This document shows positions 4,235 through 53,400 of a DNA stretch of 64,000 nt, piece after piece; the stretch's first letter is position 1, and every line of letters starts with the position of its first letter. Location of the stretch: contig CBFFRP010000151.1 in the NCBI GenBank assembly GCA_965644295.1, positions 1-64,000 on the forward strand. Direction: 5' to 3'. The DNA comes from Paraphysomonas bandaiensis. Taxonomy: Eukaryota > Protista > Chrysophyceae. Under the pieces are notes generated by a model. The model saw only the letters and a program-made list of their open reading frames with translations. It did not search any database and had not been told where the DNA came from. The position numbers were made by a program, and so were the translations under genes.

Positions 4235-4366
4235 ATGGAGTAGTCTGGATGTGAGTGTTGTGATGCGATTATATTCGGAATCATTTTGAGTTGTATCAAT
4301 TACATCACATTGTAGTAATGTTTGTATCCTTTGAGCTTCATTGAGATGAGAGTCTTTAGTTTTCAT
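4235..4366 (-). CDS. First exon of a GAF-domain sensor protein (rest of gene lies beyond window start, across the minisatellite intron)
   Basis: Manual translation MKTKDSHLNEAQRIQTLLQCDVIDTTQNDSEYNRITTLTSRLLH matches the 'E..RL..L....ILDT..e..fdriT.La.rl' entry into GAF domains; followed by a GTACGT donor at 4234. Confidence 0.7.
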
Positions 4367-4451
4367 GGTGTTAATATATACAAGTGAGCATAGAGGTGAA
4401 GTATGTTTATATATATGTATGTGTGTATATATGTGTGTGTGTATGTATATA

Positions 4452-4493
<42 letters not shown>

Positions 4494-4498
<5 letters not shown>

Positions 4499-4624
4499 CG
4501 GTAGTCAGCATCTTCTTTTTCGGAAATATATTGAAGCAAAAAGCTTCCATAGTACTGCAGTACAACTACGGCTAGAATACAGATAATTATTGTCTCAATA
4601 TTAGAGGCATCTTCGAACAAAAAT
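4494..4624 (-). mobile_element. 151-bp module/MITE family A, copy 1 (5'-truncated)
   Basis: Reverse complement contains GATGCCTCTAATATTGAGACAATAATTATCTGTATTCTAGCCGTAGTTGTA...GACTACCGATAC, as in the other six copies. Confidence 0.9.
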
Positions 4625-5940: not shown

Positions 5941-7626
5941 CTATGGTTCTTCCTCTGGCATATACTTCACAAATACCCACTCAGCTAATCTAAACACATA
6001 TTGCTTTATAGATAGCGGTAGAGTCGTATCTATAGAATGCAGTAGTTTCATAGACATATAAAGTGATGTATTTGTGTGTGTAGAAACTTCAATAATTCCC
6101 ATATGTTGGAATACAGGTAATACGTAGCTTAAGAATACGGTCGGAGGGGACATTAATGGGACTGCTACACGACCTTCTACATAATGCCTGTGAGGATATG
6201 GTGATCCGAGAGCATGTATGACACTATTCGTTACAGCTGCATTAACACTCGGCTGCAATACGCAGAGATAAGATGTCAGGAACAGATTATACGTATAGTG
6301 TAAGAGTAACTCACTGGTAATGGACGCTTCATCTGTTTGTTCTTAGTCCTCTTTCTGGATGCTCGCCTTTGCTTAGCTCGTCTTTCCTCTTGAACTTCTA
6401 TACTCTCTATCTCTAGTGGGGACGTCTCTGAGAAAAAGTGGTTCACTTGACCTACAGGTACCTCCACGAGAGACACCCTAAATTGGACACAAGATGAAAT
6501 AGCTATATGTTGTACTAGGTCCATACTACAACGAGTGCATACACAACAACCATACATGAAACAGGCGATCCCTCCCAGCCATAAAAAGTCAATCACGTTA
6601 GCATATACGCACCGATTATCTCCTAATTGATGAGAAGCCAGTTCGAAAGCTGTCCTGTCAAACGCACACGCTATTCCGCAGCCCATGTGAACCATACTGC
6701 GCATTAAATATTACGATAAGACAAACAAATCGTTATTACTCATACCGGTGTAGATAATTCTCTGCAGTCAAAGATTTGACGAAAACCACTCGACTATTGC
6801 TTGTGTTCATGTATTCCAGACACGCTTGTAGTATGCGTACTGGTCCCTGAAGGCGTTGCTGGTACTGTTCATGCAAATGTACCACATCCAGATCCATCGC
6901 CTGTCCCGTATTCATCTCCTCCGGATGGTCTATCAGCACTGCACCCACTAGGCTCCGACCCTGCCCCGTTTGCAGCTCCTGCACACGGTACATAGCTGTG
7001 GCTATTTGAGCAGGGTCCGTGAGGTCCAGAAGTACCGTCTCAATGCCTAATATACACGGAAGGTAAGAAGACGATGTTGTATACAAGGACGAGCAGGACA
7101 TATGTATACAAATATTAGCACATCTGGAAACCCATACGCAATAACTCAATACACATCACAGTATAGTAGTGACATGAAACTCTTACAGAAGAATACAAAG
7201 CGACCTCCCTCATAGTATGTTTATCTATCTATTGTATCTCTCTCTCTATATATATATGTATGCACGTAAGTATGTATCTCTCTCTCTATACGTATGTATG
7301 TATCATGTAGTATGGCAGTGTATATGTACGTATGTATGTTATGTATGTATACCTTTAACAGATGAGTACATAAGAGACTTCCTCTCTGCTTCAGAACTCA
7401 CACCCACTAAAACAAGACCACCTGCTTCAACTAATTTGAATGCAATTTCTCTACCAGGACCAGATAATGAGGATACTAATATAATACTATGAGACAAGGC
7501 TCTCGAGGAGTATACAGGCATCTCCATAGGGGTTTGAGGGTGACGGGGAATAACCCCCATTGAAGATAATGCAATAATTACAATAAATATTGCAATTAAA
7601 AGTGTATAGATAGAAATATATGTCAT
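5941..7626 (-). CDS. Membrane-anchored atypical short-chain dehydrogenase/reductase-like protein (multi-exon)
   Basis: Exon 1 (7626-7353): TM anchor plus IILVSSLSGPGREIAFKL (degenerate TGxxxGIG). Exon 2 from 7046: VLLDLTDPAQI...SRVVFV. Last exon: VTNSVIHALGSPYPHRHYVEG, like 17b-HSD/RDH C-termini. Middle exon boundaries not resolved. Confidence 0.7.
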
Positions 7627-7866: not shown

Positions 7867-8017
7867 CGTATCGGCATCGTTTGTATATTTTTGTTCCAAG
7901 ATGCCTCTAATATTGAGACAATAATTATCTGTATTCCAGCCGTAGTTGTATTGAAGTAATATAGAGTATTTCTGCTTCAATTTAATCCCGAAAAATATGA
8001 TGCAGACTGCCGACACG
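7867..8017 (+). mobile_element. 151-bp module/MITE family A, copy 2
   Basis: Termini CGTATCGGCA...TGCCGACACG plus the conserved core. Confidence 0.93.
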
Positions 8018-8316: not shown

Positions 8317-9255
8317 ATGTCAGATTTATCACTCTCTTTATCACAAATTGAAGAAGAATTAAATACAATCACATCTCTTGCTAATTCAGGTCAATCATTT
8401 AATGAAAATCGACTTGATGTCCTCTTACAGCTAAGAGAGGACAATGAAGAGTATCAGATACGTCTAAAGGGACAACACATGCAATGGATGAAAGATTGGG
8501 GGGATTTCTGTTATCAATGTTTACTTATAATGCGTGGATATATCCCTCATACAATATTTGAATCATCAATTGAAGATTTAGAGAGAGTGTATCCATTACC
8601 ACTTGCAAGAAGACTGTTTCAGAAGCAGTGTCTGTGGTTGGTAAGAGAAGATAAGAGTGAGATAGCAAGAATGCATGAGTCGGTATTATTTAGTCGGTAT
8701 AATCCTGAAGGACATGACTTGGATGTAGTTGAATTGAGTGCATTATATTGCTGTTTACCGGAAAAATTTTCTAATGACAAGAAAGAGAAGTGGCGCGCAC
8801 GTATCGAGGCTCGAGTTAAAAATATGACGCACCGTATGGAGTCAAATATCTTACCGTTGACTGCGTTACGACATGAATGTTATACTGATGTTGAAGGTGC
8901 TTTCTCTGACTTAGAGTCAGTTCACCGAAGGGAAGTTGTGAGCCACGAAAATGGGAGGAGGAAATCTTTTACCGATGTATGCCAGCGTCATTCACTATTG
9001 AGCAATATCAGGGAAGAACGTGATAAAAATGAAAATGCAGACACACTTGAGCAATTGGAAACTGATCCCAGTTCTTTGCCCCTCTCCGGGGACAAGACCA
9101 CGGAGCCCAAGGTGGATATTGCGTCAAGTACCCCTAATGTTAAAAACTCTGTTGACGAATCTCCTGCTTCAACGCCAACTAATAAGAAGAAAGGCTCTAG
9201 AAATTCTACGAGAAGAGAGAAAGTCAAAAGCCAAATCAGAGTAGCTGATATATAG
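8317..9255 (+). CDS. Hypothetical protein, 312 aa, single exon
   Basis: Clean ORF after a CATA/CACA tract; globular core (LWLVRE...LDVVELSALYCCLPEKF...KWR) and low-complexity tail. Confidence 0.8.
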   Translation: MSDLSLSLSQIEEELNTITSLANSGQSFNENRLDVLLQLREDNEEYQIRLKGQHMQWMKDWGDFCYQCLLIMRGYIPHTIFESSIEDLERVYPLPLARRLFQKQCLWLVREDKSEIARMHESVLFSRYNPEGHDLDVVELSALYCCLPEKFSNDKKEKWRARIEARVKNMTHRMESNILPLTALRHECYTDVEGAFSDLESVHRREVVSHENGRRKSFTDVCQRHSLLSNIREERDKNENADTLEQLETDPSSLPLSGDKTTEPKVDIASSTPNVKNSVDESPASTPTNKKKGSRNSTRREKVKSQIRVADI

Positions 9256-12112: not shown

Positions 12113-14479
12113 ATGGGACAAGGGAAAAGTTTAATAGGAAAGACATCATCTGAGTGTGTTATACATGAATCTCCATTAAATAAAGATAAAGATGAATATG
12201 CTCATCTTGGAACTGTTTCTGTTAAGCTTTCATGGTTGACAGCTAATGTCCGATACACTCCTGAACAACAGAATGATATTATAGTGACTGGAAAAGGTGG
12301 AATCTTTCATGGGACCTCTGCTGCTGCTCTTGCTGTGATGAAAGGTGAGATAGAAGGACTATAGGGAGATAGATGTGTGTATATGGGACTATAGGGAGAT
12401 GTATGTGTGTGTATGGGGCTATAGGGAGATGTATGTGTTAGGAGCTATAGGGAGATGTATGTGTGTGTATGGGGCTATAGGGAGATGTATGTGTGTGTAT
12501 GGGGCTATAGGGAGATGTATGTGTGTATTTTAAATGTATGTGAGATACATATTGGGGCTATATATATTTATATGTATCTCGATAGAGAAATAGTGTGTCA
12601 TGAATAAATTGGTCTACAAATGGCTTACGTGTGTGGTGCAGAGTTGGCCAAAGCGAAATTGTTTCCGAAAGAGATTCCTCTGTTGGATTCGAGGGCGCAT
12701 CAGCTTTTGATTACATACTCAAACGGATGGCACGCCATATCCTCCCCTGAAATTTTTTCACGTCATTCTGGCACGTGTATTATAATAGGTGATCGTGTGA
12801 ATCCCGGTAAGCCTTATCCAATCAAACTTGGAGACTGCTTTCGCTTGGGATCTGTGGGGGTAGTTGTTTCGGAAGTGAAAACCGATAAAGGTGTCGAGCA
12901 GAGACTTGACACCAATAGACTCCAGTATTTGCGAGAAGAAGCATTGGCTTTTGAAGGAGATCAGGATGAGGCCGCATTGGCTGCTGAGGAGGACTCTGAC
13001 AAGAAGAGCCGGGACGAGGACGGAAACACGCAGCGAGATACGGTTGCTCCCTTTTGTTACATGTGTTACGAGACTCACGACACCCCAGAGGACCACCTTG
13101 TGGCTCCATGTGACTGCAAAGGTGACACGCGGTATCTTCATGTTCAGTGTCTGCAGAAATGGTACCAAAGCTCAGTATGTGGCTCCCGAGCGCTTGTAAT
13201 CCGTACTACTGGTAACGGGGCACCTGCGTGTAAAATATGCGGTGCTGCGTACAAAACCGCTTTTCGATCTAATGGTGTCAAAACTAGCCTTCTTGAGGTG
13301 GATCATCCAGGGCCCTATATTTCTCTTGTTGTTGTTACGCGACACGATACCTCTCCTGGCCTTTTTAACACGAAGTTCCGGCTCAATTTCGGACCTGGTT
13401 ACAACGCAACTGAGCAGCAGTTGCATGAAGATCCAGCCCCTAGTGAATTGACGATTGGGCGATCAAGTGTGTGTAATATGGTTCTCGACTACCGTACTGT
13501 GTCGACTGTTCACGCAAAACTCAGCTACCGCAACGGTCAGTTCTATGTGTCTGATGCAAGGTCAAGCAATGGTACGATGGTTTATCTCCAAGGTCCCCTC
13601 CCACTTCAGAATAATCAGACTGTGCGTTTGCGCATGGGTCGTTCGACCCTGGCTATTCAAGCTCGCCGTTCGTTTTCCGCCTCCCTTAAGGGAACTCTTC
13701 AGCGAGCACCCAACCGTGTCCCCTGCACTGCATCTCTAAATGAGCTGCAGGAGGTAATGGCCTTAGCACCCCCGTATATACCGAAGTCCATTAGGAATGT
13801 TCCAGATGAAGGGTCGCCGGCGCCAGATGGTATGCGCCGCGCTTTATCTCGCGGGAACTCTCACTTGTCCGAGGGTGCTGTCGAGTCTACTAGCGTGACT
13901 GCAGCGGCCAATCCAGGAGGCATATCTGGATCAATAGCGGAGACTTCTTTGGATCGTGGAGGATCAGTCGCGCTGCCGTCAGAAGGTATCGACGGGGCTC
14001 TTATATTAGGCGGAGACATGAGAAGATCTCGTCCCAACAGTGCAAATACTGAGACCAGGGCAGATAAGGAGAGGGGTGGTGTAGCTGTGGTTCAGATGCT
14101 TTCAGACGCATCTGACGAGAAGGACAGCAGTAGCAAGCTCAGCTCTCCTAACCGATCTCCAAGAGGGGACAGAGAGAGACGCAAAAATGACACCCCGCAA
14201 CAGTCACCATATAAAGCAGAGGGAGCGCCAAGCAATACAATAGCAGAGGGATTCCGGTCCCTAGACAGTTCGGGTCCTTGTAGTCCTTTGGATGACGTGG
14301 AGGAGGGACCGGGTGTGTTGAGTAGTCCGAAAGCTAGACAGGGGGTTTGGAGAGATGATAAAAATGAAGAAGAAAATGAATGTGGTAAGGGAGGTCTAGG
14401 AAGTGGGGGCGTCGTCTCCAGTTTTTCGAAGGCAATGGTAAATGACATAATGGCATCTGCTACTTCAGATAGAAGATAA
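12113..14479 (+). CDS. FHA - RING-CH(RINGv) - FHA putative E3 ubiquitin ligase; join(12113..12344,12642..14479)
   Basis: RINGv CYMC...APCDCKGDTRYLHVQCLQKW...CKIC; FHA motifs IGRSS..SxxHA..SSNGT and IKLGDCFRLG; phase-1 GT-AG intron joins the frames; N-terminus MGQGKS. Confidence 0.9.
12355..12530. repeat. About 30-bp intronic tandem repeat (GGGCTATAGGGAGATGTATGTGTGTGTAT), about 6 copies
   Basis: Seen directly inside intron 12345-12641. Confidence 0.9.
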
Positions 14480-19776: not shown

Positions 19777-20547
19777 TTAATACCATTGACTTATAAATTC
19801 ACCAAATCTGGATGCACGACTGATTCCAAATATGTTTCCAGCGATATACATGTACCAGGACGGCAAGAAATGAAGATCTTCAAAGGTACTTGTCAATATT
19901 CCATTTGCAATGACTTCAGATTGTAGACAATTCAAACCAAAATACTTTTGAGGTTGTGTTTCTCTTTCTACTGATACAACAGAACATACTTGTTTATTAT
20001 ATGAATAAACAGTATCTCCATATTGTAATGATACAGCAGTTTGATATCCATTCGATGTAACAACTAAATGATTATCAGTAAGACGTAATGTATGAATATG
20101 TTGATGACATTGAACAGTAAGGATGACACCAATCGATTGTATGATATGAGGAATATAACACTCTGATTGTTTGTCTTGTATGAGATCATTCATAGATAAC
20201 TGTGTATGATTATATTCAATCAAAGTATTTTCATGATAACATTTTTTTATATTACTTTCACATGTATATGAATGTAACTGACATTGTAATGTATGACACC
20301 AAGTGATACATTCATCTTCCATATCATCATCATCACTACATTGAAATTCATAACATGCTATCGATGTGATGTTGGTTATACAGTTCTCACTAATATAACG
20401 TCCATCTAAAAGGGTTTTACATGAGAGTAAAGCATCGTTACAGTCATGGATGGAACATCCAGTACATTTACATGTACCATCATCATCATGTTCACTATGT
20501 GAAAGTATGTATTGTAGTAGAAGAATGAATAGATGGAAAGATTTCAT
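19777..20547 (-). CDS. Secreted Cys-rich protein with C-terminal Hint (Hedgehog/Hog-type autoprocessing) domain
   Basis: Signal peptide; 12 Cys in aa 26-96; Hint start CYHENTLI (C103), block B LRLTDNHLV, LQYGDTV, VVSV, VIANGILTSTF; short amphipathic tail. Confidence 0.85.
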   Translation of the reverse strand: MKSFHLFILLLQYILSHSEHDDDGTCKCTGCSIHDCNDALLSCKTLLDGRYISENCITNITSIACYEFQCSDDDDMEDECITWCHTLQCQLHSYTCESNIKKCYHENTLIEYNHTQLSMNDLIQDKQSECYIPHIIQSIGVILTVQCHQHIHTLRLTDNHLVVTSNGYQTAVSLQYGDTVYSYNKQVCSVVSVERETQPQKYFGLNCLQSEVIANGILTSTFEDLHFLPSWYMYIAGNIFGISRASRFGEFISQWY

Positions 20548-33535: not shown

Positions 33536-34933
33536 ATGAATTTAATGAAAGAAACAAGTAAAAGATTTCAACATGTCTTAAGTATGGAACAGAAAAGAGT
33601 ATATGATTTCAATGAAGGGGATGACAATAGAGTGTTGTATGGTATAAAGGGCTCTGATCTATGCGTATTAAACAAGATGTTATTACCAATTCCACCTGGT
33701 TTTATTCTGACAACTGAAAATTTTATAGAATATATGAATACAGGCGAAAAATTAAATGAAAAATTAAAAACAGAATATAGAAATCATATACATGCATTAG
33801 AAAGACATACTGGACGTAAGTTTGGTGGTGCATCGAATCCTAGTGGAACATCGAATCCTAGTGGAACATCGAATGATAAGAAATTACCATTATTATTATC
33901 TGTACGTGCAACAGCTCCTATTGTTGTACCTGGGTATGTGGATTGTATTGTATACTATATATGGTCTTATTATTGTATATATACAGTCTTATGGATACCA
34001 TACTTAATGTTGGAATGAACGATGTTGTGGTGAGTTATCTGACGGGACTTAATCAAGGATACACTAAGTTTGCTCTGGATCTTCATCGACGCTTCTTGTA
34101 TATGTTTGGTGTCCTCGTGCTACGTAACAGTGCTGCGAAGTACGAACGGGTTTTGGCGACGGCAATGGATATGGATGAGGTGGACAATGTGGCTTCGTTG
34201 ACCTGTCAAGGCCTTGCATATGTGGTTGGGGAATTCAAGAGGTTTACTGCTGCACCGGATGATCCATACGAGCAGCTGGATATGGTCATCGAGGCAATGT
34301 ATCAGCACTCTCTTTCGCCGAGGTACTGATAGATCGGATGCATATGTTTTTGTTGACTAGTTTACTGTGTGTAGAGTATCTGAGTACCTGGACATGTACA
34401 CGTCTTCTGTTCAACAGACCCCAAGGTCCTTGGCTATAATAGTTCAGATGATGGTATACGGCAATCTCAACAGAAATTCGGGTAGCGGCGTGGCCTTCAG
34501 TAGGCCCCTCAGTGAGAGCCAGGATAGAGATGGGGATGGTTTCCCTGTAGGAGAGTATCTGGTCAAAGCAGAGGGTAAAGAGGTGTTAGAGGGAGACAGA
34601 GACCCTTCCCCAATGGAGGTAAAATACTGCAATACAATACTTTAATTATCATTTGTTAATACTTTTTACTTGCAGGACCTCAGATACACTATGCCTAATG
34701 TTTATAGAGAACTCCTTCAGCATATGTGGACCATGGAAGAGAAAGACAGAGCCATTGAATATGTGGAATTTACGGTAGAAGATGGCGTACTGTATGTGCT
34801 CGAGACAAGTGCGGTGAATCTACGGCCTAACAGGAAGGATGCACGGTTTGTTGTGTACTATGACCTTCTTCGGAAACTGCAAGAGGAGGAAGAAGATGAT
34901 GAAGAGTACAAAATGAGAAAGGATTTCAAGTAA
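33536..34933 (+). CDS. Stand-alone pyruvate phosphate dikinase N-terminal (ATP-grasp) domain protein; join(33536..33933,33987..34322,34375..34618,34676..34933)
   Basis: YGIKGSDL, LPIPPGFILTT, PLLLSVR, PGLMDTILNVGMN, QMMVYGN..SGSGVAFSR, GEYL, VEFTVEDGVLYVLET; three in-frame GT-AG introns; stop before the His-carrier domain. Confidence 0.88.
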
Positions 34934-35947: not shown

Positions 35948-38900
35948 TCACGTCAAGAACCGCTCGTCGACTAATGTTTTTCTTGCAATAACGTTCTGTT
36001 CAATAATTAGACATAGTTATGGATTCACAAGAATTGACGATTTACCTGGCCGATATCGTCTCTGAGCTTGCATATAAGCAAGTCCAGCAAGTAGCAGAGA
36101 AGTATGGAGGTAGCAGTGGAGTTGAACCACAAGTCAAACATAGCATATGAGAGTACATTCAAAAGTAGAAGATCAAGCTCGCGTCCAAGAAAGAGAACAG
36201 AGGAGTAACTAAAATACTCGTCCGGATAGAAAACACATGGTTGACCTGGCGCTGTAAGATCGGGAGGTACTCGCATGAGCTTTTCAAGATAAGTTGGAAG
36301 CTTCACCTTCCTTCTGAGATCTGGAACATTAAAATTGTTTTCTATGAAACCCTGGAGGAAAGCATTTAACTCCCCCCAAGCTTTGATAACTCTGTCTGTG
36401 GGAGTTGCTCGATTCTGACCGAGTGAACCACGCCCCTGCCCTCGACGAGAGGCAGCAGTGGAGGCAGCGTTGCTTAGCAATCCACACAGGTCACCAGTAT
36501 CTGGTGGTACCAGAGTAGAGCATATTTTGTCGTATCTTCTGCGCCATTCTGCCGTGACGAAAACTTCAAAGCTCTGAACATCGGGAGGAGCACCTTCCAA
36601 CGAGCGGTCCACCGTTAATCCTACTTCCTCTTTGTGTAACATGCTAACTAACTCAGACATCGACCCATCCGCATACTGATGTGGTGACCGGCAATGAAGA
36701 TAGAAACCGTGATAGGGCTCGTCCATTACAATCAGACTCACCTTCGCAATAGTGCACATATCCACAAAAATTTGCTCTTTCGGCTCGGATATGTACCGCT
36801 CATAAATGATGAAACGCCAAAGCAGCTGAGCGGAAGACACCACGAACCACCACCACGTTGTGTTGGCGAACCTCAATATGATATTGTGTCGACCATCCTG
36901 GAGGTTATCCAAGTCAGGCTGTTGTGTAGCATTGTTTTCAAGCCCCAGTCCAATCAGAAAGAAACCAATGAAGAGCAACGAAAAGCGTACATCTGTGCGC
37001 CGAATTGATTGCATTTCATTCCACTCATTAGCCACAAGTATGGTCCGCCAAACAGATACTCCGCCTGTTCCATCTTTAGCTTTACTCTTCGACGGTTCCC
37101 AGTCAATAAAAAATATGTCAGCGTTCGCCTGACGGTACACCATATGGGCAACATACCCTAACTGGAAAAAGAATAAGAGGTGCAACATAGAAACGAAGAC
37201 GTTATAGTCAGATCCCGATGAATATATATCTTCCATTGGCGGGAGCATGACCGCCACGGTGTCTTGTATCTTGAAAAAAACGAACCAGTACTGACACACC
37301 AAAAGGGTCATTGGAAAGAACACTTGTACCCAACAGTGCATGGCGATAGCAGACACATCCATTAATACGGATAAAGTTAGCCCATTAGTTCCCTGCCCTT
37401 GTACTGCAACAGCAGCAAGGGGGCGGGTGTTGCGTGTTCGCCAATTGAAGTACCTCAACAGAAAAAGCAGAACGAACAACACAATCCCAGCGATGAAGAA
37501 GCCGTCAAGAATAGAAAAAAAATCATCGGTGTTCATAGAGTACCGAGCATCGAAATGTGTTTCTGTATAAGCCTCAGACCGGCGCGACTCCCAACCACTG
37601 GTAGAGGCATCTTTGTACTGAATTGTTAAGACAGGGACGTATATCTGCTCCGGGTCGTCTTCTCGAATTTGTACATCGAGAAATATTGTGTCTGCATACC
37701 TCACAACTACTGGGGCATATGAACCGTCAGACAAAGGAGTCTGAAAAGACGCATCGGTTAACCCGGATACGATGTCGAACAGCATGAACCGCCGGACGTG
37801 GACCTCGCCTGAGGCGCACACCTCACCATCTACCCGTAGAGAGTTAGGGCTAGAGCCGTCCTGCTTCAGATTAGTGACACGAACTGGAACCGGCACCAGT
37901 CCCCCAGTTTTACTGTCCAATAGGTAGAGATCGTAAAAAAACTGCTCTTGGTCGAGTAGCATAAACAGGTCGCATTTAAATGATAAATACTCTGTGCTGC
38001 CAAATATTTGCCATTGTGTGCTTGATGAAGTTCCCCCACCCCTATCAGACGCCGGGGCAGCACGTGGGCAATAAGAAAAGAGAGTCTCCACATCCTCGTA
38101 ACCAATAAATGTGCCGTTCATTGCGTATTTGGCCACTACATATTGCAAATGTAAAGAATCAAGATTCATTTTCATCTGTACACTCTTGTCTTTGCAAGGG
38201 TTGCCACTATCGGAGTAATAGAGCCAAGGCATACCATATCCCCAATTAGGAATACCATTGAGGATGTTCTCATCCCGACCTGCTGTAATACTAGCAAATG
38301 TAGAGCATGGCAAGGCATCACTGTCGTACAAGTGCAGCACACACAGGTTCGCCAGCACCTGACAATCAAAATTGTTTTCTGGAGACCCATAATACGTGCA
38401 TCCTGTGGCGGCTTTAGCATAATAATGCTGTATGGTTGTAGAGGTTCGGGTGCCAATACTGTAGGTCACTTGAGACGCCTGGGTCGTCGACGACACAAAA
38501 GGAGACGCAAGGGATGTTAACAAACAACTCTGAGATCCAATAACTGTCTGCCCAACCTTCGTGTACCCAGAAGCACAAGAACAGGAGGCAACATCACCAG
38601 TAATCGCCATAGACATATGTTCATCGGGACAAGACTGACAGGCATATGGATTTGCCTCTAGCCACACCCCCGCCACTTTCTGAGATACGGAAATGACTCC
38701 TTTCCCGGCGGGACAGTCACCGCACTGCTTAGACGGAAGTTTGTTACCAGCGGCATCTGTTTCTAGCAATACCTCGGGACATGTACACTCACCATCTTCT
38801 AAACCACCTGTAGTGGCTCCACATGGTACACATGAAGTATCATCAGAATAACTTGTATTACCAGATGATAAACATGATACACATGTAATTCCTTGACATG

Positions 38901-39222
38901 TTCCTGATGTATCCTATTATACAGATCAATCTCAAACATTTCATATGATCTCAATAGTTTAGATCTTTACCTGTGAACAATCATTCTCTATCTCCATATA
39001 TCCATCACGGCATATACATGAGAGCATATTGCCATACATATCCGTTATAGAGGAATCAGGTATGAGATCATACCCTCCTGTATGATTACAATATTGACAT
39101 GTTAAAGATGCAATATCATAGTATTGATTTGTGAAACACTGAGTGTTATATGTATGAATTAATTGAATAGAGTGTGTATATATGAGAAGATGTGTATATA
39201 TGAGAAACTGGATAAAGAGCAT
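35948..39222 (-). CDS. TMEM67: Meckelin (ciliary transition-zone protein), 3 exons
   Basis: Cys-rich N-terminus, CQVLANLCVL, DIFFIDWE, SVWRTILVANEWNEMQ, HGFYLHCRSPHQYAD; last exon NVIARKTLVDERFLT* (35995-35948). Confidence 0.96.
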
Positions 39223-40328: not shown

Positions 40329-41186
40329 ATGAGATTAAATGGCTTTACAATCATTCGACTGCTTCTGTTTGTATGTTCTCTGCAGTATACGCTCTCTTTG
40401 AGGTATATCAGTATGGTTAGCGGGGGATGTCAAGGGAGCTCCATTACACAGCATTATCTTCGTGTATTTCTAGAAGAACTTGGACATGTTTTATGTAAAG
40501 CTCCAAGCGAACCGTTTCATGTGATATTTCCGGATAGTACACACGATGTAATGAACTTACAGCAATTTCAATACTATGAATCGCAGTGCTTATCATCAAA
40601 TGCCACTGCTTTCATATATAAGTTATCACATATGAAGAATGATACTGTGAATACGTATCTGGCTGAAAGAAATGCGATGAGATTTCGTCTGATTCGAAGA
40701 AATGCACTTGATCACAAAATATGTTCAATTAGAGACTGCTTTGACCGAAGTCCGAAACATGGGTTTCCTTGTGATAGCAAAGGCAATCCTAACCACGTAT
40801 GTATGAAACGACGTCGCGATCCCAATGCCACTAGCCTGGCTTGTGTTAATCCAGAGGGGTTTATCTCGGTAGTGGCTAATATGCATAATGAACAGAAGCG
40901 AGTGATAGCTACTGACCCTACTACTGTCTTATCTGAGAATTTGTTGGCCTTTCAGTACAACTTCGACGGTGCGCTAGATATAAGCATGCAAGAGTGGCAT
41001 CGCCTTTTATCGAGCATTGGTGAAAAAGTGACATTAAGAAGAGTACAACAACTTCTTTGGGAGCTGGATTGGACTCCTCGAAGCTACACTCCTCAACGGA
41101 AGGAGATATACAACTATGACGCTTTTGAAAAAGCACTTATGGGGCATGGAAAAGAGGAGCTTATTGCTATGCTCCGGCGGTATTGA
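40329..41186 (+). CDS. Signal-anchored protein, possibly P-loop sulfotransferase-like
   Basis: N-terminal hydrophobic segment; SGGCQGSS and IRRNALDHKICS resemble degenerate PAPS-binding motifs. Confidence 0.6.
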   Translation: MRLNGFTIIRLLLFVCSLQYTLSLRYISMVSGGCQGSSITQHYLRVFLEELGHVLCKAPSEPFHVIFPDSTHDVMNLQQFQYYESQCLSSNATAFIYKLSHMKNDTVNTYLAERNAMRFRLIRRNALDHKICSIRDCFDRSPKHGFPCDSKGNPNHVCMKRRRDPNATSLACVNPEGFISVVANMHNEQKRVIATDPTTVLSENLLAFQYNFDGALDISMQEWHRLLSSIGEKVTLRRVQQLLWELDWTPRSYTPQRKEIYNYDAFEKALMGHGKEELIAMLRRY

Positions 41187-43818: not shown

Positions 43819-43819
<1 letters not shown>

Positions 43820-44086: not shown

Positions 44087-46614
44087 ATGAATTCAATACA
44101 AGATATATGTTATCAATATCTTCATGGACTTGATACAGATATACTTCATTATATTATTGATCTCATTGAATCATATGAAGATACGGATATCACTGAATTA
44201 CAAACTATGATCAGTGAGTTTCTTACTAGCACTGATTATATAAATACAGATGATGAAGCATTACAATATACAAAAAAACTATTAAATGATTGTAATCTTA
44301 AGAATTCATTCAATACGAAACATGACCATGAAAATACACAAGTATTATCGGATGAAATTAAAAAAAAATTAATTAAGATCGATACTATACATACACAACA
44401 TCACACTGTGTTTAATGCAACATCATCAACTTCATCATCATTACCATCAACTTCATCATCATTACCATCAACTTCATCATCATTACCATCAACTTCATCA
44501 TCATTACCATCTAAAGTTTCAATACCATTTATAGAAAAATGTCATGAAAAAAAAGAAAATGAAAAGAAACATAAGAGTAATAAACATATTCCTCCTGTGG
44601 ATAAGGTGAAAGGACAAGTTCAAGAGATTGATAATGAATTAGAAGCTGCTCAAATTGCTGCTGCAATTGCTCGTTCACGAGAGGGGGCATATAATGGTGC
44701 CTTGGAAGCATCTGGATTCACCCTTGCGAACCCAGGTGGAGGACCTCCATTGCTAGAGAATGCATCTTGTACACTTCTACGTGGCCGTCGGTATGCACTT
44801 ATTGGGAGAAATGGAAAGGGAAAGACGACTTTGTTAAGGGCTTTGGCAGCACGTCAAGTGGGAGACATTCCAGTCAATGTCACGGTCCATTATGTTTCAC
44901 AGGAAGTTAAACTGACCCCTACCACACGAGAGTGGACACCCGTACAGTGTGTGCTTGAGGCTCATGTCGAGCGACGCTTATTGTTATCGGAGTCACAGCA
45001 ATTGGAGGAGAAAAGTATAAAGGAGGGATTAACTGAATCTGAAAGAGAACGACAGTGTGAAGTAATGGAGCAACTGGAGCTCATCGATTCTGATTCCGCG
45101 GAAAGGCGAGCTGAAGAGCTGCTGAAAAACTTGGGTTTCTCTGAAGAGATGCGCGCCCGCCCATTAAAGGAGCTCTCCGGAGGGTGGAGAGTTCGAGCCT
45201 CATTAGCAGCTGCGATTTTTGCCGAACCAGATTTATTGCTTCTGGATGGTAAGTTCTGATACAACCTTTGTTACGGTGTCGCGGTGTGTACATCCTAGCC
45301 TATGTGATTATCTCTTTGGAAAGATAGTAACTTGTTTTTATAGAGCCTACCAATCACCTTTCTATTTTGGCCGTCCTCTGGTTAGCTCGTGAGTTATCTA
45401 CTTCCGATGTGTGGAAGGATCGGATAGTTGTGGTGGTGTCTCATGATAGGTATTTCATTGATGAGGTGTGTACTGATACGCTTCATATTTCTGGAGTAGC
45501 CAAGAGGCTCACTCAAACTAGAGGGAATTACTCTGCCTGGTCTTCTAGGAGGAAAGAACAGCAGCTTGCCTTTTCGCGAGAAGCTGCAGGACGTGAGGCC
45601 GAGATTGAGCGGTTGAAGGAATACGCTGGTCACGGATTTCGGTATGGGGGATCGTCTTCGCAGATTAACAAGATGCAAATGAAAGCCAAACAAGCCGAGA
45701 AGCTCGAGTCGGAGGCGGCTAATCAGGCAGAAGAGCTGGCAGCATTGCAGGAAGATGTTGAACTGCCTTTAACTCTCCATGCTGGAGGAGAGGTGGAAGG
45801 ATTCCTAGTCCAAATGCTTGGGGTTGGTTTCGGATATCCTGGACATGCTAAATTGTTTTCCAATGCAGACTTCAGTGTCACAAGTAAATCGCGTATAGTG
45901 ATTCTTGGAGAGAATGGAAATGGCAAAACTACACTTGTGAAACTCATGTTAGGCGAACTATTACCTACAGAGGGCGAGATCAAGAGAGACCCTAGAGGTC
46001 GTTTCGCCCTTGTAAACCAGCACCACGCAGACCAGATCCCCCTCGATATGACGCCATTACAGTTCATGTTATCGAAGTTTCCTGGGGATGGAAGTTATGA
46101 TCATACCCTAAAGTTGAGGTCTCAACTAGCCAGTTGTGGAGTTACTGGTGGCGATCCAGATCTTCAAAACACCCCATCTCTTGCGCTCTCTGGAGGTAAG
46201 AGTGGTGTGTTATCTACGAATGCTTTGTAGTATCGCCAATGTGATAGATTTCTGATGTACTGATTTTTTGACGTGTGTAGGTCAGCGTTCACGAGTGGCA
46301 CTCGCTGCAGTTTCTTACACGAGGCCACACGTTCTTGTGCTTGACGGTAGGTGTATGCAAATGGTAGCGTGCTCTGTTGATTTGCGCAATTTTTAGAGCC
46401 CACTAACAACCTGGATTTGGAATCTGTGGCAGCCTTGGCGCAGTCCGTTAAAAATTTCGAAGGGGCGGTTGTTGTAGTATCACACGATCATTACTTTGTA
46501 TCAGAAGTGGCTGATGAAGCTTGGGTTGTTAATGGGGGCACTGTAACGCGAATTTCGTCGTTTGAGGCTTATCGGAACAAGCAACTTGCAAAGTTGAACA
46601 AAAAATCAAAATAG
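44087..46614 (+). CDS. ABCF3: ABC-F family translation factor (GCN20/ABCF3-like); join(44087..45248,45344..46195,46281..46346,46397..46614)
   Basis: Two NBDs (GRNGKGKTT/LSGGW/LLDEPTNHL and GENGNGKTT/LSGGQR/VLDEPTNNLD), no TM segments, ABCF3-like helical N-terminus. Confidence 0.9.
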
Positions 46615-47718: not shown

Positions 47719-49251
47719 TTATACTTCAACAGTTTTGCTAGTTGAGGATTTCTGCTGCACATCGCTCCGTGGCGGTGCTACATGGTGTGATGAGTCGGGA
47801 AGAATTGGATCTCTATCCGACACCATGTTGGGCTTTGTAGTTTTAAACGCAAAAAGCACCATCACCAGGACAGCAACCACTGATATTACAATAATAGAAA
47901 GAAATACTGCATATACAGTGCCAGATCCAAGAGCACCCTCCTCACCATTATCACTATAGTTCGCACCATCTTCCGGCTCAGACACCTCGAACAGAGCAGA
48001 CATGCCCGCCATTCGGTGGCTCTGATGTCCACTGACCAGTGGCCAGATTCCAATCGACTCTGGGATCATATCTACTGTTGCATACCCTGGAGAAGAAAAT
48101 GCCACATAGTCCGAGTAATGTCCTGTGGAATCAGTTACTGGGTTGTTGGTCCACTCCACACGCTCTGTCTGTACATAGCTGTCGTCAGAGGCAGAGAGAA
48201 TATGCCAGCGCACCCTAGACTGGGCTGGGAAAGTTAGACCCATAGATGGGCCAAGGTTACCGAACATATAGCCGTTTATAGTTTTCCGGTAGGAGTTCGA
48301 TATTAGATCCTCGTCTTGGTACAAGTTGTCATCATCACCCTCCAGAGCTTTTAAGCTTTCGATCCAGAGCCTTATGATAGACATAACAAAATACCATCAA
48401 TTTATTGGAGTTGCAGAGATAAAATAAGTGAAAAGTGCACGATGCTTACCAGCTCTGTGACTCATCAAACTCGCTCAGCATAAGAACATGCTCGTGATCT
48501 ACATCACAAGGTCGGGCGGCACTTCGTTGTGAGTTCGAGGTTATAGCATTCGCGCGGACCACAACGATGGAACCTAAGAGGCCAGTATGCGAATCTCTGC
48601 CTAAGCTAGAGTCCGAATGGTACATCCATACCCTTGAGGAGAAAGACTGTCCATCCGGTCCAGAATCAGACAGAGCTAACCATGTATAAGTCGTTTCTTC
48701 ACCGTAGCCAATCTTATCGTCGAAACTCTACAGGCAAATCACCACAATTGCGGTACAGAAAACATGCATACCTGAGTATAGAAGAGACCATGAGGGCGTA
48801 TGTTGTAGTACTGACTTGAACAATTATTGTAGAAATGCACTTTAACTGTGTCCCCAACAACAGCTATAAGCAAACATAAGCTTCATACATATATATATAA
48901 TACTGATATATAACCTCTTATTGTTGGTCCTGTAACACCATTAACAGATGAATGAGTAAGTGGTATTGACCATTCACAACGATTCTTCTTCTTATTATAT
49001 TGATACTGTCGATAGACGGCTTTCTTAAATACTTTCCCAATATTCTTATCACTAGCTGTAAGTATCGCTTCCGCTTCATCTTCATACATGCCTGTAAGAT
49101 CCATTGTACTATTAAATGACATTGGTGCATAATTCCAATTAATATGATCAGCAGATATACAGTAATGACGTGTAGTTGTATGGTATGTGTATTGCTTATG
49201 ACATGATCCATATACAGTGATTAAACTAATCAAAGATATGAATATATGCAT
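47719..49251 (-). CDS. Two-domain ceruloplasmin/hephaestin-like cupredoxin membrane protein, 4 exons (49251-48915, 48863-48772, 48727-48450, 48370-47719)
   Basis: RHYCISADHINWNYAP, IGKVFKKAVYRQY, GPTIRAVVGD, WMYHS...TGLLGSIVV, INGYMFGNL, TVDMIP..GIWPL..HQSHRMAGM; signal peptide and C-terminal TM. Confidence 0.85.
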
Positions 49252-50038
49252 ATCTGTATATTGTTATTAAATTGAGAAGATAAGAATTGAATTGAAATCA
49301 ATTTAATTGTAATGAAAGTAATGAACTTAATGTATATATATATGAATAGATGAGTATATACATACATACATTCATACATATATATATATGCTTTAACGGC
49401 ATTTTTATATATAAGGGAAGAAATTTTTTTTTTTACAACAAGGAATTTTGTAATAGAATTGTAATTTTGTATAGATGTATACTGTATAGCGTTTTAATAG
49501 AGGGGGAAAAAGAGACAATTTTTTCATGAAAATTGTTTTCTTGTTGTATGTAATTATGTAGAACGGTATAATGTATATCTAGATATTGAAATTTTTGTAG
49601 GGGAATATTAAAAATATTAAAATTTTGGTGAGGGAATATACGCTTCGTCATAGGGGAAAAAATGGGGTTTTATAGATGTAATTTTATGGGGCAAATTTTC
49701 ATAAAAAATTATTATGTATATATTGCTACTTGTACACTATAAAGGGACAGGAATACATTGTACTGTACATAGTACCAGGCTATCGGTATACAGCAGGCTA
49801 TCGGTATACACAGTAGTGCAGTGGACGCTGTATGGTAGATACTCTTGTTATAGTGGACTGGAATACATTGTAGTCATGAGGTATATCCAAGAAATTCTTG
49901 GTGTTTTATATGACATTCCTCGCATATTTCTTTACCTTCTTCAGGGGCTGTATATCACTGTATACAACAGTCCAAAGTAGAAGATACAGCAGTATGTTTC
50001 TTAGGATAGGGATATATACACACCCATCTAGTAGTATA

Positions 50039-50189
50039 CGTATCGCCTTCCTTTGTATATTTTTGTTCCAATATGCCTCAAATATTGAGACAATAATTAT
50101 ATGTATTCAAGCCGTAGTTGTATGTAGGTAATATAGAAGATTTTTGCGTCAATTTATTTCCGAAAAATAAGATGCTGACTGCCGATACT
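50039..50189 (+). mobile_element. 151-bp module/MITE family A, copy 7
   Basis: Termini CGTATCGCCT...TGCCGATAC plus the conserved core. Confidence 0.93.
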
Positions 50190-50412
50190 ATAGTAGGATA
50201 GTATGCATGCATGCTGCTGCATGGTGTCTTCGTATCATATCATACATAATGAAGTCATATGAAGAACACTTCATCATATAGCCATACCATACATACACAT
50301 CCCATATATACACATTCATATATATATACACCCATATATATATATATACATAATCATATCTATTCAATAGATAGTTTCATTTTCACGATTTAGATCCATT
50401 TCATTCTAAATC

Positions 50413-53400
50413 ATGAATAGATCAGAAGAGAAATCTAATCAAAGGACTCTACAGGTATGTATGTATATGACATGAAATGATTATAAAAATTCTATAATTT
50501 AAAGGATCAAACGGATGAATTCTCTACATTAAATTCATTAAATAAACCGATGGATAATGAAGATGTAACTAGATGTCTTGTTTTTATTATAGAAATACTC
50601 ATATATATATATAGGAGTTAGTGTTTACTGCTGATGAGGACAGTAATATACATATAGATGAAGATGAAGATGGTATATATGCAGTTAAACAAGTGTATTA
50701 TTATCATATGATGTATATGATATAGAAACAGAGATGAAAGTAGATTCATTGGAAGATACTAATCAACATATGTTGCATGGTTTCCCTCACTCAGACCAAT
50801 CAACTGGTCCACTTCATGCAGAGGATACTGAAGTGGCTATAAAATGGGACTTTAGGGAGGCAACACTACCTCCGGGAGTGGAAGTAGTTGGAGCTGAGCC
50901 AGAATTTGTGCTTCAAAAAGATGGTTCTACGGCTCTGCTTTTGCCACCCATGAGTTATTTGAAGGTAACCGTATAGCTACTTACTAGTATCGCGAGTAAA
51001 CATGCAATAGCTTTCGTTTGATAAAAAGGAGGGGCAGATGCCGACAGGACTGGGAGGCAAACTAATCAACGACTATACTCTTACTGTTGATATGCTACTG
51101 GACCGGTAATGGGACACATATATACGGAGTTGTAGAAAAGTTCTTCCATTATTATCTAAAATGCATATCATAATATTTTGTTATATTGACTGGTCAGTTG
51201 TACTGTAGGCTACCATCGGAGTCGATGTCACTCTTTCAGTGCTCTGGAGTGGCCGGGTCCACCGAGGGTGAAGCATTCGTATACGCCACTGGTGGAGTGG
51301 GAATTTTTGGGGAAGTAGGGGTTCCAGAGGCAGGACTACAACCAGGAAAATTCAATAGAGTGGTAGTAACTGTTGGGCCTACTGAAAAGCCTGCTATTAC
51401 AGACCGGTCAAGACAACGTCCGTTTCGTAGCTCTCAATTCAATTCAATGCTACCGGAGTATGAGGATGAAGATGAGTTTACGTTTTCAAGACAGCCCTCC
51501 GTTTCCCGTGAAATGCGTACGTATGTAAATACCAAGAAGTGCGCCACGATATCATCTGATAAGCGTGGGGTTTTGGCGCAGACTGACGGAAGGTTCGCTG
51601 CTCATACAGATGTAAGTATCATCGACTTAGACGATGTGTTTCACTCTGCTGCATGTGTAGGGGATCACTGTGTTTGGGAGTAATCGTATTGAGTCGATGG
51701 GTAGTGGCAAGTTAGTGAAATTCATTGAGTTTCGCCGCGGTGCCTTAAAAGAGTCTGTAGTTCGTAGTCACGGGTTTAACAACCGTACCTACTCCCTGTG
51801 GGACAAGCAACGTAAAGCAGAGATTGAGGCACGCCAGAGGCAGCTTACGCTGAAGCCAGTATACAAAAATCCACCTCCATTTTGGATGCATCCAATGCTA
51901 TGTGCCGAGTTTGGAGATGCATTTTTAGAAGGCACAGGGCTAGAGGGTGGCGATTTGGCAACTTCTACCTCTGCCTATGAACTGGTGCTGAATCGGTTGG
52001 TGAACGAGCTCGCAGGAATTCAGGATGACCAGGATAGAGATAGAAATTCTGATAGTAAGGAAACGAGTTCTCGGGTCGAAGCTCTGCTAACGGACTTTAA
52101 CTTCTCTCATGAAGAACTCCAATCACTTAATTACTTAAGTGTTGCGTTTCAGACCACCCGATTGTTATGTAGGCGTTTTGAGCTCACCAAGAAGAACGGC
52201 ATTCAGCAACTTGTACATTATTTCAAAGTTCTGAAGAAGACCTTATCAGGCCTTCAGGATGGACAAATTCTGATTGCACCAGGTGGAATCGGAAGCAATG
52301 CGGTGATTTATATTGTGGAGAGGGAGGGAGCCGATTGCTTTCGGTTCTGTGTCGTGAACACTAATCCCACTTCGGGACTGGAATGGCACGTATGCACACC
52401 AGAATATGCACCCTATATAAAATACCAGACTGTGCTTGTTGTTAAAGGGGTCACACATGCCAAAATTATGGATGAAGCATTCTGGGGCATACTTCTTAAG
52501 CTTGCGGTGGTTCCGTCTAAACAAAACACGCCGGACAAGTTGTATAACCTACTACTACCGTTTTTAGTGGACAAACCGACTGAACAAATTGTGTGTGAAT
52601 CAGAAGTTGATGAACACATTGAGGTTCGTATGCCGCAAAGGTCTAATACATCTTATGTACGATGTATTACGGAAGCTTCTTACTATGTTCTACGCCGAAG
52701 GGGCCTCCCAGTCGCTCGGTGTCGCCAGATGCTGTTCGCTATTGAGCTCCAGATGATAGAATTCATCCGGCACGACTTAGTTTTTATGCGCTCAGTAGGC
52801 AACAATGACAAGAAGATTATTCGTATGGCGTGTACGGAGCTGGCTCGCACAGGTGCTCAAATGGGAAACGACAATGAGCTATCTCTGATACAGATGCAAC
52901 ACTTGAACAGCTTTGTATCCGCTGTGAATGATTCTTCTGAATCACTTCCTTGTGACGATGCAGATGCATCTGCGGACCAGTCTCCGGTGGATTTACAGGA
53001 GTCTTCAGAGCAGAGACAAGACTCTCATTTACTGTTTCCACTAATGGACCGGTTGCGCAGGCTAGATGATGTAGATGGACTTGCAGGGCCCCCGATTGTT
53101 CTGCCGAAATATGTTCCAGTAGATATGCTGCAAATCCCAGAGCAAGCACGGGATCTCGATGCTGCCATTTCCGCAATTCGATACTGTGATCGCTTATGCA
53201 CTCTTATATCTGTGCAGCCGCATTGTATAAAGAACCGATCCCTGTTGAAGGTCTCTCTTATTCAGCATACCTTTACCTCAGTGTTGCCGTGCCCGAGAGC
53301 GAGGTCGGCAACTGACTTCTCGTCCTGCATTTGGCAAGCGCCAATGACTTACTCAATTCAATTGGACATCGCGATATGTCTGGGGAGAATCATGGAGCAT

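Follow-up and report, generated by a model that had tools for sequence, protein, structure and literature searches.

Why should the genes of a protist begin in one base composition and continue in another? The question arises from a 64,000-nucleotide window (positions 1 to 64,000 of contig CBFFRP010000151.1, assembly GCA_965644295.1) of the chrysophyte Paraphysomonas bandaiensis. There, a first-pass annotation had proposed that most host genes open with an AT- and ApT-rich, CpG-poor coding segment that switches abruptly to balanced GC after about 400-600 bp. The observation held up in this window. All eight segments picked out in that annotation are AT-rich (GC 0.27-0.34), CpG-poor (CpG o/e 0.18-0.67) and ApT-rich (o/e 1.17-1.49). 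In 10 of the 11 host genes whose 5' end could be placed, third-codon-position GC (GC3) is 0.12-0.25 at the start and 0.39-0.54 downstream. The coordinates of the individual features are collected in the table below.

Table. Features of the 5' zone and adjoining gene parts within the 64-kb window.
Feature	Coordinates	Strand	Composition and structure	Support
FG-GAP gene, AT-rich 5' coding zone	29081..29647	-	189 codons, GC3 0.16; encodes FG-GAP repeats	Pfam FG-GAP_3, 57.4 bits within this zone alone
FG-GAP gene, balanced downstream part of the same exon	27056..29080	-	GC3 0.42	
ABCF3-type gene, AT-rich 5' coding zone	44087..44680	+	198 codons, GC3 0.12; includes a 21-nt x4.2 perfect repeat at 44424-44511	Relatives cover 99% of exon 1 at 42-51% identity
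ABCF gene, balanced part	44681..46209	+	ABC_tran domains, GC3 0.43; one 95-nt intron	
Meckelin gene, 5' zone	38791..39222	-	Exon 1 (39222-38971), intron 1 (38970-38914, GC 0.26) and the first 41 codons of exon 2; GC3 0.20	Exon map from the 100%-identical spliced product P0001; N-terminus aligns with orthologues
Meckelin exon 2, balanced part	36046..38790	-	GC3 0.48	
FHA-RING gene, exon 1 plus intron 1	12113..12640	+	Exon 1 about 12113-12340, GC3 0.19; intron about 300 nt; balanced exon 2 from about 12641, GC3 0.45	Spliced product P0163 (100% identity) maps to 12113-12328 and 12641-14476
PPDK_N-like gene, exon 1 plus intron	33536..33988	+	Exon 1 GC3 0.19; 53-nt intron; downstream exons GC3 0.50	PPDK_N profile positions 5-61 in exon 1 and 160-217 in a downstream exon; splice sites read from the sequence
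Gene 48886(-), exon 1 plus intron	48858..49251	-	Exon 1 GC3 0.22; 51-nt intron; downstream exons GC3 0.47	Model inferred from reading frames and GT-AG sites only
Giant gene (to at least 64000), 5' exons	50413..50780	+	Four short AT-rich exons, three introns of 50-53 nt (GC 0.18-0.23); balanced composition from about 50773-50790	DUF3645; 5' exon model inferred
ORF, AT-rich almost throughout	19780..20547	-	256 codons; GC3 0.16 for 226 codons	No Pfam match
ORF 8317-9255, weak 5' zone	8317..8580	+	GC3 0.23 vs 0.39	Not significant by permutation
Short-chain dehydrogenase-like gene, likely first exon	7342..7620	-	GC3 0.25 against 0.54 downstream at 6760-7047	Weak Pfam support; model inferred
ORF without a clear 5' zone	40329..41183	+	GC3 0.33 vs 0.43	Not significant

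To locate the switch, we fitted change-points to GC3 and compared each with 200 permutations. In the FG-GAP gene the change falls at codon 189 (0.16 to 0.42), with an LR of 44.8 against a permutation maximum of 20.6. In the ABCF gene it falls at codon 198 (0.12 to 0.42; LR 47.7 against 17.3), and in meckelin at codon 41 of exon 2 (0.02 to 0.48; LR 43.2 against 16.6). A step fits better than a 20-codon-wide transition for FG-GAP (dNLL 3.7) and meckelin (2.7), whereas ABCF is compatible with either. The switch is therefore abrupt in two of these three genes. The polarity is also uniform, as a 5-state HMM with symmetric switching found AT-state to GC-state junctions only in the direction of transcription, with six non-repeat cases and none running the other way.

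There are weaker cases and exceptions. The split in ORF 8317-9255 is supported only by a Fisher p of 0.01 on an HMM-chosen split. The ORF at 19780 is AT-rich almost to its stop, about 680 nt, and the ORF at 40329 is the one apparent exception. The FHA-RING gene looked like another exception until the spliced product P0163 placed its true first exon.

The AT-rich parts are real, conserved coding sequence. One possible reading, that they are lineage-specific N-terminal extensions, is ruled out because they encode FG-GAP repeats, the start of PPDK_N, the cysteine-rich meckelin N-terminus and an ABCF N-terminal region shared with relatives. These searches used single exons. In addition, two spliced products in the protein database, P0001 and P0163, include the AT-rich exons; each lies on a contig barely longer than its coding sequence and so probably derives from a transcript. 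The region from 51 to 64 kb was also considered as a mobile element, but it is one giant host gene with its own AT-rich start. Rfam and tRNA scans of the window found nothing. The first-pass claim that N-termini become rich in I, Y, H, T and N was also confirmed: I, Y, T, N, H, C and K go up in the zone, and A, R, V and P go down.

Does the switch follow the exons or the distance from the gene start? It lies inside exons in the FG-GAP, ABCF, meckelin and giant genes, and at the first intron in FHA-RING, the PPDK_N-like gene and gene 48886. Across seven genes, the distance from ATG to switch is less variable in genomic coordinates (367-594 bp, CV 0.18) than in mRNA coordinates (220-594 nt, CV 0.38), with all distances measured from the ATG in place of the TSS. 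Introns inside the zone are more AT-rich than downstream introns (GC 0.22 vs 0.33, Mann-Whitney p=0.0016) and have twice the ApT density (21.7 vs 10.7 per 100 nt; o/e 1.45 vs 1.01), although several intron models are inferred and three of the six zone introns come from one gene. The effect therefore acts on DNA or pre-mRNA, not on codons. Four-fold sites behave similarly, with GC 0.15 in the zone against 0.42 downstream.

Compared with synonymous-codon shuffles, ApT is over-represented only in the zone (523 vs 477.9+-6.2, z 7.3, against z 0.6 downstream). Codon-junction o/e values in the zone are AT 1.53, TA 1.02, AA 0.72 and TT 0.55. The preference of ApT over TpA and the AA/TT deficits also exist downstream, albeit more weakly, and could reflect homopolymer and UpA avoidance amplified in AT-rich DNA. 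The excess lies in SATS (97 vs 70.6, z 6.2; 8 of 8 genes) and VATB (z 5.4) contexts, not in WATW (z -0.3), and there is none downstream. A 2025 paper reports SATS and VATB contexts as best methylated by AMT1, with the highest methylation at SATS and poor methylation in WATW/TAT (PMC12695648). Thus the sequence context agrees with that substrate preference, though only as a sequence correlate and not as evidence of methylation. An aggregate ApT profile of 8 genes showed no readable nucleosome-scale periodicity.

The first-pass interpretation was a TSS-anchored chromatin or mutational domain, tracking distance from the gene start rather than exon structure, with symmetric 6mA at ApT deposited by an AMT1/MTA1 complex as one candidate. 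This interpretation is partly supported: tracking of distance from the gene start rather than exon structure is supported by our data, whereas the data leave both a mutational and a selective origin possible and bear on the methylation candidate only indirectly. A profile search of the genome's contigs gave one MT-A70 (PF05063) hit, on contig C68 (G000:C68:13755-14093, + strand; 74.7 bits, in a 466-aa open frame), which could belong to the AMT1, METTL4 or METTL3/14 subfamily. There were no Dam-type (PF02086) or N6_N4 (PF01555) hits. CpG decay driven by 5mC would call for a DNMT1/3/5-type cytosine methyltransferase and a depletion specific to CpG. A search for cytosine methyltransferases gave only one weak DNA_methylase hit (34.9 bits, partial profile); CpG o/e is 0.53 in the zone, but GpC is also low (0.64) and the loss of GC3 affects all contexts.

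We consider a DNA-level compositional domain anchored at the gene start to be the best explanation, with moderate confidence given about 11 genes from one 64-kb window. In this view, the domain runs from the promoter through the 5' UTR, the first exon(s) and the first intron(s), and ends about 370-600 bp after the ATG. What the analysis shows is that weakly constrained sites within it (four-fold sites and introns) are pushed to GC 0.15-0.22, that ApT is over-represented and AA/TT under-represented, and that conserved protein domains are still encoded there, with amino-acid usage dragged towards AT-rich codons. What we infer, from sequence alone, is that the domain corresponds to a promoter-proximal chromatin territory of about three nucleosomes, whose DNA is kept AT- and ApT-rich by a fixation bias tied to that chromatin state. 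This could be selection for ApT or low-stability DNA, or protection of ApT, and the most concrete candidate is ApT adenine methylation by an MT-A70 enzyme. The zone length would fit the three post-TSS 6mA peaks of the stramenopile Aurantiochytrium (PMC12695648). However, the ochrophytes sampled in that paper lack AMT1, and it found no effect of 6mA on base composition.

Taken furthest, this chrysophyte-like stramenopile would have hard-wired a promoter-proximal adenine-methylation territory into its DNA, with selection, or protection from mutation, keeping ApT (especially S-flanked ApT) dense across the first three or so nucleosomes of most genes. It would be strong enough to drive synonymous sites, introns and even protein N-termini to extreme AT-richness. 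This would be the first case of a 6mA system visibly shaping base composition and protein sequence genome-wide, in an ochrophyte lineage where AMT1 has so far been reported absent. The evidence does not exclude this reading, but it is unlikely.

Of the alternatives, a purely mutational domain survives best, though we regard it as doubtful. Here, initiation-associated damage, or a repair or gene-conversion pathway excluded from the promoter-proximal nucleosomes, would give a stronger GC-to-AT bias near the start, with no function attached to the resulting sequence. Accordingly, introns, four-fold sites and upstream DNA all shift together, CpG is more depleted in the zone than downstream (0.53 vs 0.79), TpG/CpA are in excess, and the amino-acid drift looks like passive AT pressure. 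However, a generic GC-to-AT bias predicts neither the ApT-specific excess over synonymous shuffles nor its SATS/VATB context. Surviving C is enriched after T and is not depleted after A, which does not fit APOBEC- or AID-type deamination, and the coding strand has A>T and C>=G at four-fold sites, which does not fit non-template-strand deamination. Abrupt steps are also hard to obtain from a diffuse mutational gradient. Substitutions among the seven copies of a promoter-associated repeat were too few to be informative (equilibrium GC 0.37, CI 0.19-0.64), and a metagenome scan with a 20-nt core of this repeat, which may have left out records of the window's own genome, returned five unrelated chance matches.

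Less likely still, the gene body could be the derived state, with GC-biased gene conversion or codon-usage selection raising GC3 in exons from about 500 bp onward and the 5' part showing the neutral AT-rich baseline. Some exon-specific GC-raising force does exist, since downstream exons (GC3 0.46) are richer than downstream introns (0.33) and 3' flanks (0.32-0.40). But the zone lies below the baseline and not on it, as its introns and four-fold sites are poorer in GC than downstream introns and all non-coding DNA (0.35), and this model does not explain why the ApT excess is confined to the zone.

Selection on the mature mRNA or on translation is very unlikely. Codon usage in the first 125-200 codons does differ strongly, and 5' codon ramps and reduced start-proximal structure are established in other organisms. 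However, introns, which are absent from mature mRNA, share the low GC and high ApT, the zone is 4-6 times longer than known ramps, and the switch is better anchored in genomic distance. A nascent pre-mRNA effect, such as avoidance of R-loops, is not excluded by these points. Equally improbable is a peculiarity of this contig end or of our gene models, for although the only other piece of the genome analyzed (contig C1, 200001-212742) showed no AT-state coding at all, that piece looks repeat- or element-rich and holds no clear host gene starts, spliced database products match two of the models exactly, and conserved domains span the switch.

If the pattern holds genome-wide, it is a clean natural experiment on what sets base composition inside genes, as a two-state boundary about 500 bp from gene starts ignores exon-intron structure and overrides codon usage and part of the amino-acid choice in conserved proteins. 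The sharp boundary would give a sequence-only read-out of a promoter-proximal chromatin territory. Two open questions would become directly testable in one organism: whether a TSS-proximal mark such as 6mA leaves an evolutionary footprint, which the largest survey so far says it does not, and how much of protein N-terminal composition is dictated by DNA-level forces. Practically, gene finders and codon-usage tables for this lineage need two coding states. A single-state coding model could under-call first exons, as even a two-state HMM missed the first exon of FHA-RING.

Literature searches found no description of a reversed, step-like 5' AT zone, but several known systems resemble it in part. 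In the 5'-to-3' GC3 gradients of grasses and other plants, and in the GC-rich 5' ends (CpG islands) of vertebrate genes, synonymous-site composition likewise depends on distance from the gene start and can change within or between exons, and it is usually explained at the DNA level, by recombination/gBGC or by methylation. Related papers are PMC4316631 and PMC2895627. A gBGC-type gradient is highest at the 5' end and declines gradually, whereas here GC3 is lowest at the 5' end and rises in a step, with an ApT-specific dinucleotide excess and a drag on amino-acid composition. As the first-pass annotation had stated, the sign is the reverse of that in plants and vertebrates.

The post-TSS 6mA territory of AMT1-encoding unicellular eukaryotes (Tetrahymena, Chlamydomonas, early fungi and Aurantiochytrium limacinum; PMC12695648, PMC7145601) is compatible in size and may match in position, covering the first few nucleosomes after the TSS, where the mark is confined to linkers downstream of the TSS of active genes; it also matches in its target dinucleotide ApT, with a preference for S-flanked ApT. 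That, however, is an epigenetic mark reported not to shape base composition, while here only a sequence footprint is seen alongside a single unclassified MT-A70 gene. Translational ramps and reduced mRNA structure at the start of coding sequences also alter 5' codon usage, but they cover about 30-50 codons and concern mRNA only, whereas this zone is 125-200 codons long and includes introns. Finally, the AT-rich isochore-like blocks made by repeat-induced point mutation in some fungal genomes share sharp AT-rich/GC-balanced boundaries in a compact genome. Those blocks are repeat-rich, gene-poor regions of many kilobases, whereas here each block is a promoter plus the first about 500 bp of conserved single-copy genes.

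Introns in the window are short (44-95 nt, with one of about 300 nt) and follow the GT-AG rule. Pfam searches identify a meckelin, an FG-GAP protein, an ABCF-type ATPase, an FHA + RING-variant protein, a PPDK_N-like protein, ankyrin-repeat genes, a Copia-type RT fragment, and a gene with DUF3645. The best named relatives of two of these proteins are chrysophytes: Ochromonas (61%), Ochromonadaceae sp. (62%), Paraphysomonas (74% over a short stretch), and Epipyxis (43%). The organism is therefore a stramenopile near the chrysophytes. The region at 51-64 kb is not a mobile element but the body of one giant host gene, which has a uniform GC of about 0.46, few short introns, and no internal AT-state segment, and which runs off the end of the window. 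The Copia-type fragment has a balanced composition and no AT-rich start.

Coordinates of genes, repeats and related matches, with third-position GC (GC3) of each gene split at its change-point or at its first intron (positions refer to the window unless another contig is named)
Feature	Position	Strand	5' GC3	Downstream GC3	Remarks
Meckelin gene	36028-38913	-	0.20	0.48
Meckelin, database protein P0001	39222-38971, 38913-36046, 35995-35951				1055 aa, 100% identical spliced product
FG-GAP gene	27056-29674	-	0.16	0.42	AT-rich part 29081-29647
ABCF-type ATPase gene	44003-46227	+	0.12	0.43
FHA-RING gene	12608-14476	+	0.19	0.45
FHA-RING, database protein P0163	12113-12328, 12641-14476				689 aa, 100% identical spliced product
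PPDK_N-like gene	33482-34906	+	0.19	0.50
Gene 48886			0.22	0.47
Giant gene	50413-64000		0.19	0.46	at least 13.6 kb; start codon at 50413; DUF3645 match at 59918-60628
SDR-like gene			0.25	0.54
ORF 8317			0.23	0.39	weak
ORF 19780-20547	19780-20547		0.16 for 226 codons	0.40 in the last 30
ORF 40329	40329-41183		0.33	0.43	not significant
Ankyrin-repeat genes	9874-10154 and 31788-32466	opposite strands			both built from an 87-nt tandem unit (3.2 and 7.8 copies)
Copia-type reverse transcriptase fragment	15785-17032	-			RVT_2, 103 bits
Upstream repeat, seven copies	43900-44015(+), 4493-4606(-), 7905-8011(+), 20701-20788(-), 25654-25765(+), 30135-30241(+), 50077-50188(+)				about 112-135 nt, copies 85-95% identical
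Tetranucleotide arrays	32732-33042, 39666-40214, 43424-43842				near-perfect, 78-137 units
Satellite at contig start	1-4205				27 bp, about 156 copies, 97% identical
10-bp tandem array	41955-42478				52 copies, downstream of ORF 40329-41183
Tandem repeat in ABCF coding zone	44424-44511				perfect, in-frame, 21-nt x4.2
Minisatellite in FHA-RING intron 1	12355-12526				30/56/86-nt
MT-A70 hit	C68:13755-14093				74.7 bits
HSP70 matches	C264:1614-3425, C264:7592-9403, C426:321018-322829, C290:62073-63884				870-874 bits, intron-free
Second stretch examined	C1:200001-212742				contig end, GC 0.40-0.57

The first-pass annotation described most host genes as starting with AT-rich coding DNA that switches abruptly to a balanced composition, and within this window the observation holds. 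The eight segments it singled out all have GC 0.27-0.34, CpG observed/expected (o/e) 0.18-0.67, and ApT o/e 1.17-1.49, whereas the whole 4235-50800 span gives 0.38, 0.71, and 1.16. In 30-codon bins, the FG-GAP ORF reads GC3 13, 16, 13, 16, 10 and then 40, 43, 53, and ABCF exon 1 reads 3, 20, 16, 13, 0, 20, 20, 23 and then 43, 50, 40, 56. Maximum-likelihood change-points on third positions far exceed 200 permutations. In FG-GAP the change falls at codon 189 (GC3 0.16 before and 0.42 after; LR 44.8 against a permutation maximum of 20.6), in ABCF at codon 198 (0.12 and 0.42; LR 47.7 against 17.3), and in meckelin exon 2 at codon 41 (0.02 and 0.48; LR 43.2 against 16.6). A logistic fit prefers a width of 2 codons or less for FG-GAP and meckelin, where a 20-codon width costs 3.7 and 2.7 log-likelihood units, respectively, whereas ABCF is compatible with either a step or a transition of about 20 codons. 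Thus, the description as abrupt holds for two of the three intra-exon cases.

The AT-rich segments are coding and lie at gene starts. Two database proteins, P0001 and P0163, are 100% identical to spliced products of window genes, and as each sits on a contig only a few hundred bases longer than its coding sequence, they probably come from transcripts. P0001 shows that the AT-rich exon 1 of meckelin is part of a spliced product on record. P0163 matters because the long FHA-RING ORF has no AT-rich start and looked like a counter-example. Its true first exon has a low GC3 and is followed by an intron of about 300 nt, and then by a balanced exon 2. The AT-rich parts also encode conserved sequence, as seen when exons were searched singly. 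FG-GAP_3 and FG-GAP repeats score above threshold within the AT-rich part of the FG-GAP gene alone, PPDK_N profile positions 5-61 lie in the AT-rich exon whereas positions 160-217 lie in a balanced exon, the meckelin signal peptide and cysteine-rich N terminus align with orthologues, and relatives cover 99% of ABCF exon 1 at 42-51% identity. The possibility that these parts are lineage-specific extensions is therefore rejected.

The pattern is found in 10 of the 11 genes with a placeable start, a count that leaves out several other genes, including the two ankyrin-repeat genes, whose 5' ends could not be placed. We also trained a five-state HMM on the window (non-coding, plus AT-state and GC-state coding on each strand) with symmetric penalties for switching between the two coding states. 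It placed every non-repeat AT-to-GC junction in the direction of transcription (six cases) and none the other way. The model mislabeled microsatellites and the 27-bp satellite as AT-state, and these calls were discarded; the satellite is ApT-rich and open in several frames, so that it gives spurious 950-aa ORFs. In the second stretch examined, at the end of contig C1, there is no AT-state coding; it has a higher GC, a duplicated block of about 1.2 kb, and a 748-codon ORF (GC3 about 0.63) that runs off the contig. Elsewhere in the assembly, four HSP70 matches score nearly equally, two of them 6 kb apart on one contig.

To determine whether the effect is on codons or on DNA, we pooled the coding sequence of both compartments. 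GC at the first, second, and third codon positions is 0.41, 0.35, and 0.18 in the 5' zone and 0.54, 0.41, and 0.46 downstream. At four-fold sites, the fractions of A, T, C, and G are 0.47, 0.38, 0.08, and 0.07 in the zone and 0.26, 0.33, 0.19, and 0.23 downstream. The key new result concerns introns. Six introns inside the zone have GC 0.18-0.26 (mean 0.22), whereas nine introns further down the same genes have GC 0.23-0.43 (mean 0.33; Mann-Whitney p = 0.0016). ApT density is 21.7 against 10.7 per 100 nt, and ApT o/e is 1.45 against 1.01. Two of these introns are fixed by P0001, but the rest were inferred from reading frames and GT-AG sites, and three of the six zone introns belong to the giant gene. 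The 300 nt upstream of the nine start codons have GC 0.30, and all non-coding DNA called by the HMM has GC 0.35 and ApT o/e 1.09. So the 5' zone lies below the non-coding baseline and is the anomalous compartment, rather than merely a part of the gene that lacks a gene-body GC boost.

The distance from the ATG to the switch is 367, 395, 432, 452, 528, 567, and 594 bp in genomic coordinates (CV 0.18), whereas in mRNA coordinates it is about 220, 340, 375, 400, 228, 567, and 594 nt (CV 0.38). With n = 7, this is suggestive but not decisive. Together, these results argue for an effect on DNA, or at most on nascent pre-mRNA, that is measured from the gene start.

The ApT signal was examined with control for codon-position-specific base composition. 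ApT o/e is 1.30 in the zone and 1.00 downstream, and CpG o/e is 0.53 and 0.79, respectively; in the zone AA is 0.82, TT 0.75, and GpC 0.64. At junctions between codons in the zone, the o/e values are 1.53 for AT, 1.02 for TA, 0.72 for AA, and 0.55 for TT. Compared with shuffles of synonymous codons, which keep the protein and the codon usage of the zone, observed ApT is 523 against 477.9 ± 6.2 (z 7.3) in the zone and 1459 against 1451 ± 14 (z 0.6) downstream. The excess is context-specific. With the ABCF tandem repeat removed, SATS is 97 against 70.6 (z 6.2, above expectation in 8 of 8 genes) and VATB is 235 against 202 (z 5.4), whereas WATW is 182 against 183.5 (z -0.3). Nothing is enriched downstream. 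However, weaker deficits of AA, TT, and TA exist downstream too, so part of the signal may be homopolymer and UpA avoidance amplified in AT-rich sequence. The preference for T over C at two-fold sites is about 0.90 after A, C, or G but only 0.70 after T, which does not fit TpC- or WRC-directed deaminases.

Repeats accompany several of the gene starts. The upstream repeat, with at least 902 candidate copies genome-wide, lies 70-300 nt upstream of start codons and in the same orientation as the downstream gene in the four cases with a clear gene (ABCF, the giant gene, ORF 8317, and ORF 19780-20547). It may be a promoter-carrying MITE-like element or a shared core promoter. It has no Rfam or tRNA match, and a metagenome scan with its core returned only chance matches. 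Each of the three tetranucleotide arrays reads (ACAT)n on the sense strand of the adjacent gene that has a strong 5' AT zone (PPDK_N-like, meckelin, and ABCF), whereas the genes on the other side of two of the arrays (the ankyrin gene on the minus strand and ORF 40329) show a weak zone or none, although the numbers are very small. The unit of the 10-bp array contains a GTAAGT motif, like the consensus 5' splice site. Two tandem repeats, the one in the ABCF coding zone and the minisatellite in FHA-RING intron 1, lie inside the 5' domain.

Six-frame Pfam searches of the whole 62.5-Mb, 669-contig assembly revealed one MT-A70 hit, on contig C68, which is identified at the family level only. The same searches gave one weak, partial DNA_methylase hit (34.9 bits) and no MethyltransfD12 or N6_N4_Mtase hit.

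What the analysis establishes directly is a two-state, polar compositional domain anchored at the gene start, which covers exons and introns and carries an ApT-specific excess. That this domain mirrors a promoter-proximal chromatin territory of about three nucleosomes, with a fixation bias toward AT and ApT, is an inference from sequence alone, as is any adenine methylation within it. The interpretation in the first-pass annotation, of a chromatin or mutational domain anchored at the transcription start with 6mA at ApT as one candidate, is partly supported: the switch tracks distance from the gene start rather than exon structure, whereas the 6mA candidate has only sequence correlates behind it. 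We consider the chromatin-linked, non-neutral reading somewhat more likely than not, whereas a 6mA system as its basis is a minor possibility within it. A purely mutational domain is the strongest alternative, though it seems unlikely. Gene-body GC enrichment is improbable, as the zone lies below the non-coding baseline. Selection on the mature mRNA and a local artefact are both very unlikely.

One close comparison is with the 6mA system of AMT1-encoding eukaryotes, which carry symmetric ApT 6mA just after the TSS, co-extensive with H3K4me3 (PMC12695648). In that study, SATS is the best-methylated context, and WATW and TAT are the worst. The stramenopile Aurantiochytrium limacinum encodes AMT1 as its only MT-A70 gene and shows just three 6mA peaks, whereas the ochrophytes sampled have no AMT1 (Aureococcus has only METTL4). 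The same study found no effect of 6mA on base composition. Although membership in this system remains unproven and the prior from relatives is unfavorable, the sequence footprint described here matches it in place, size, and context.
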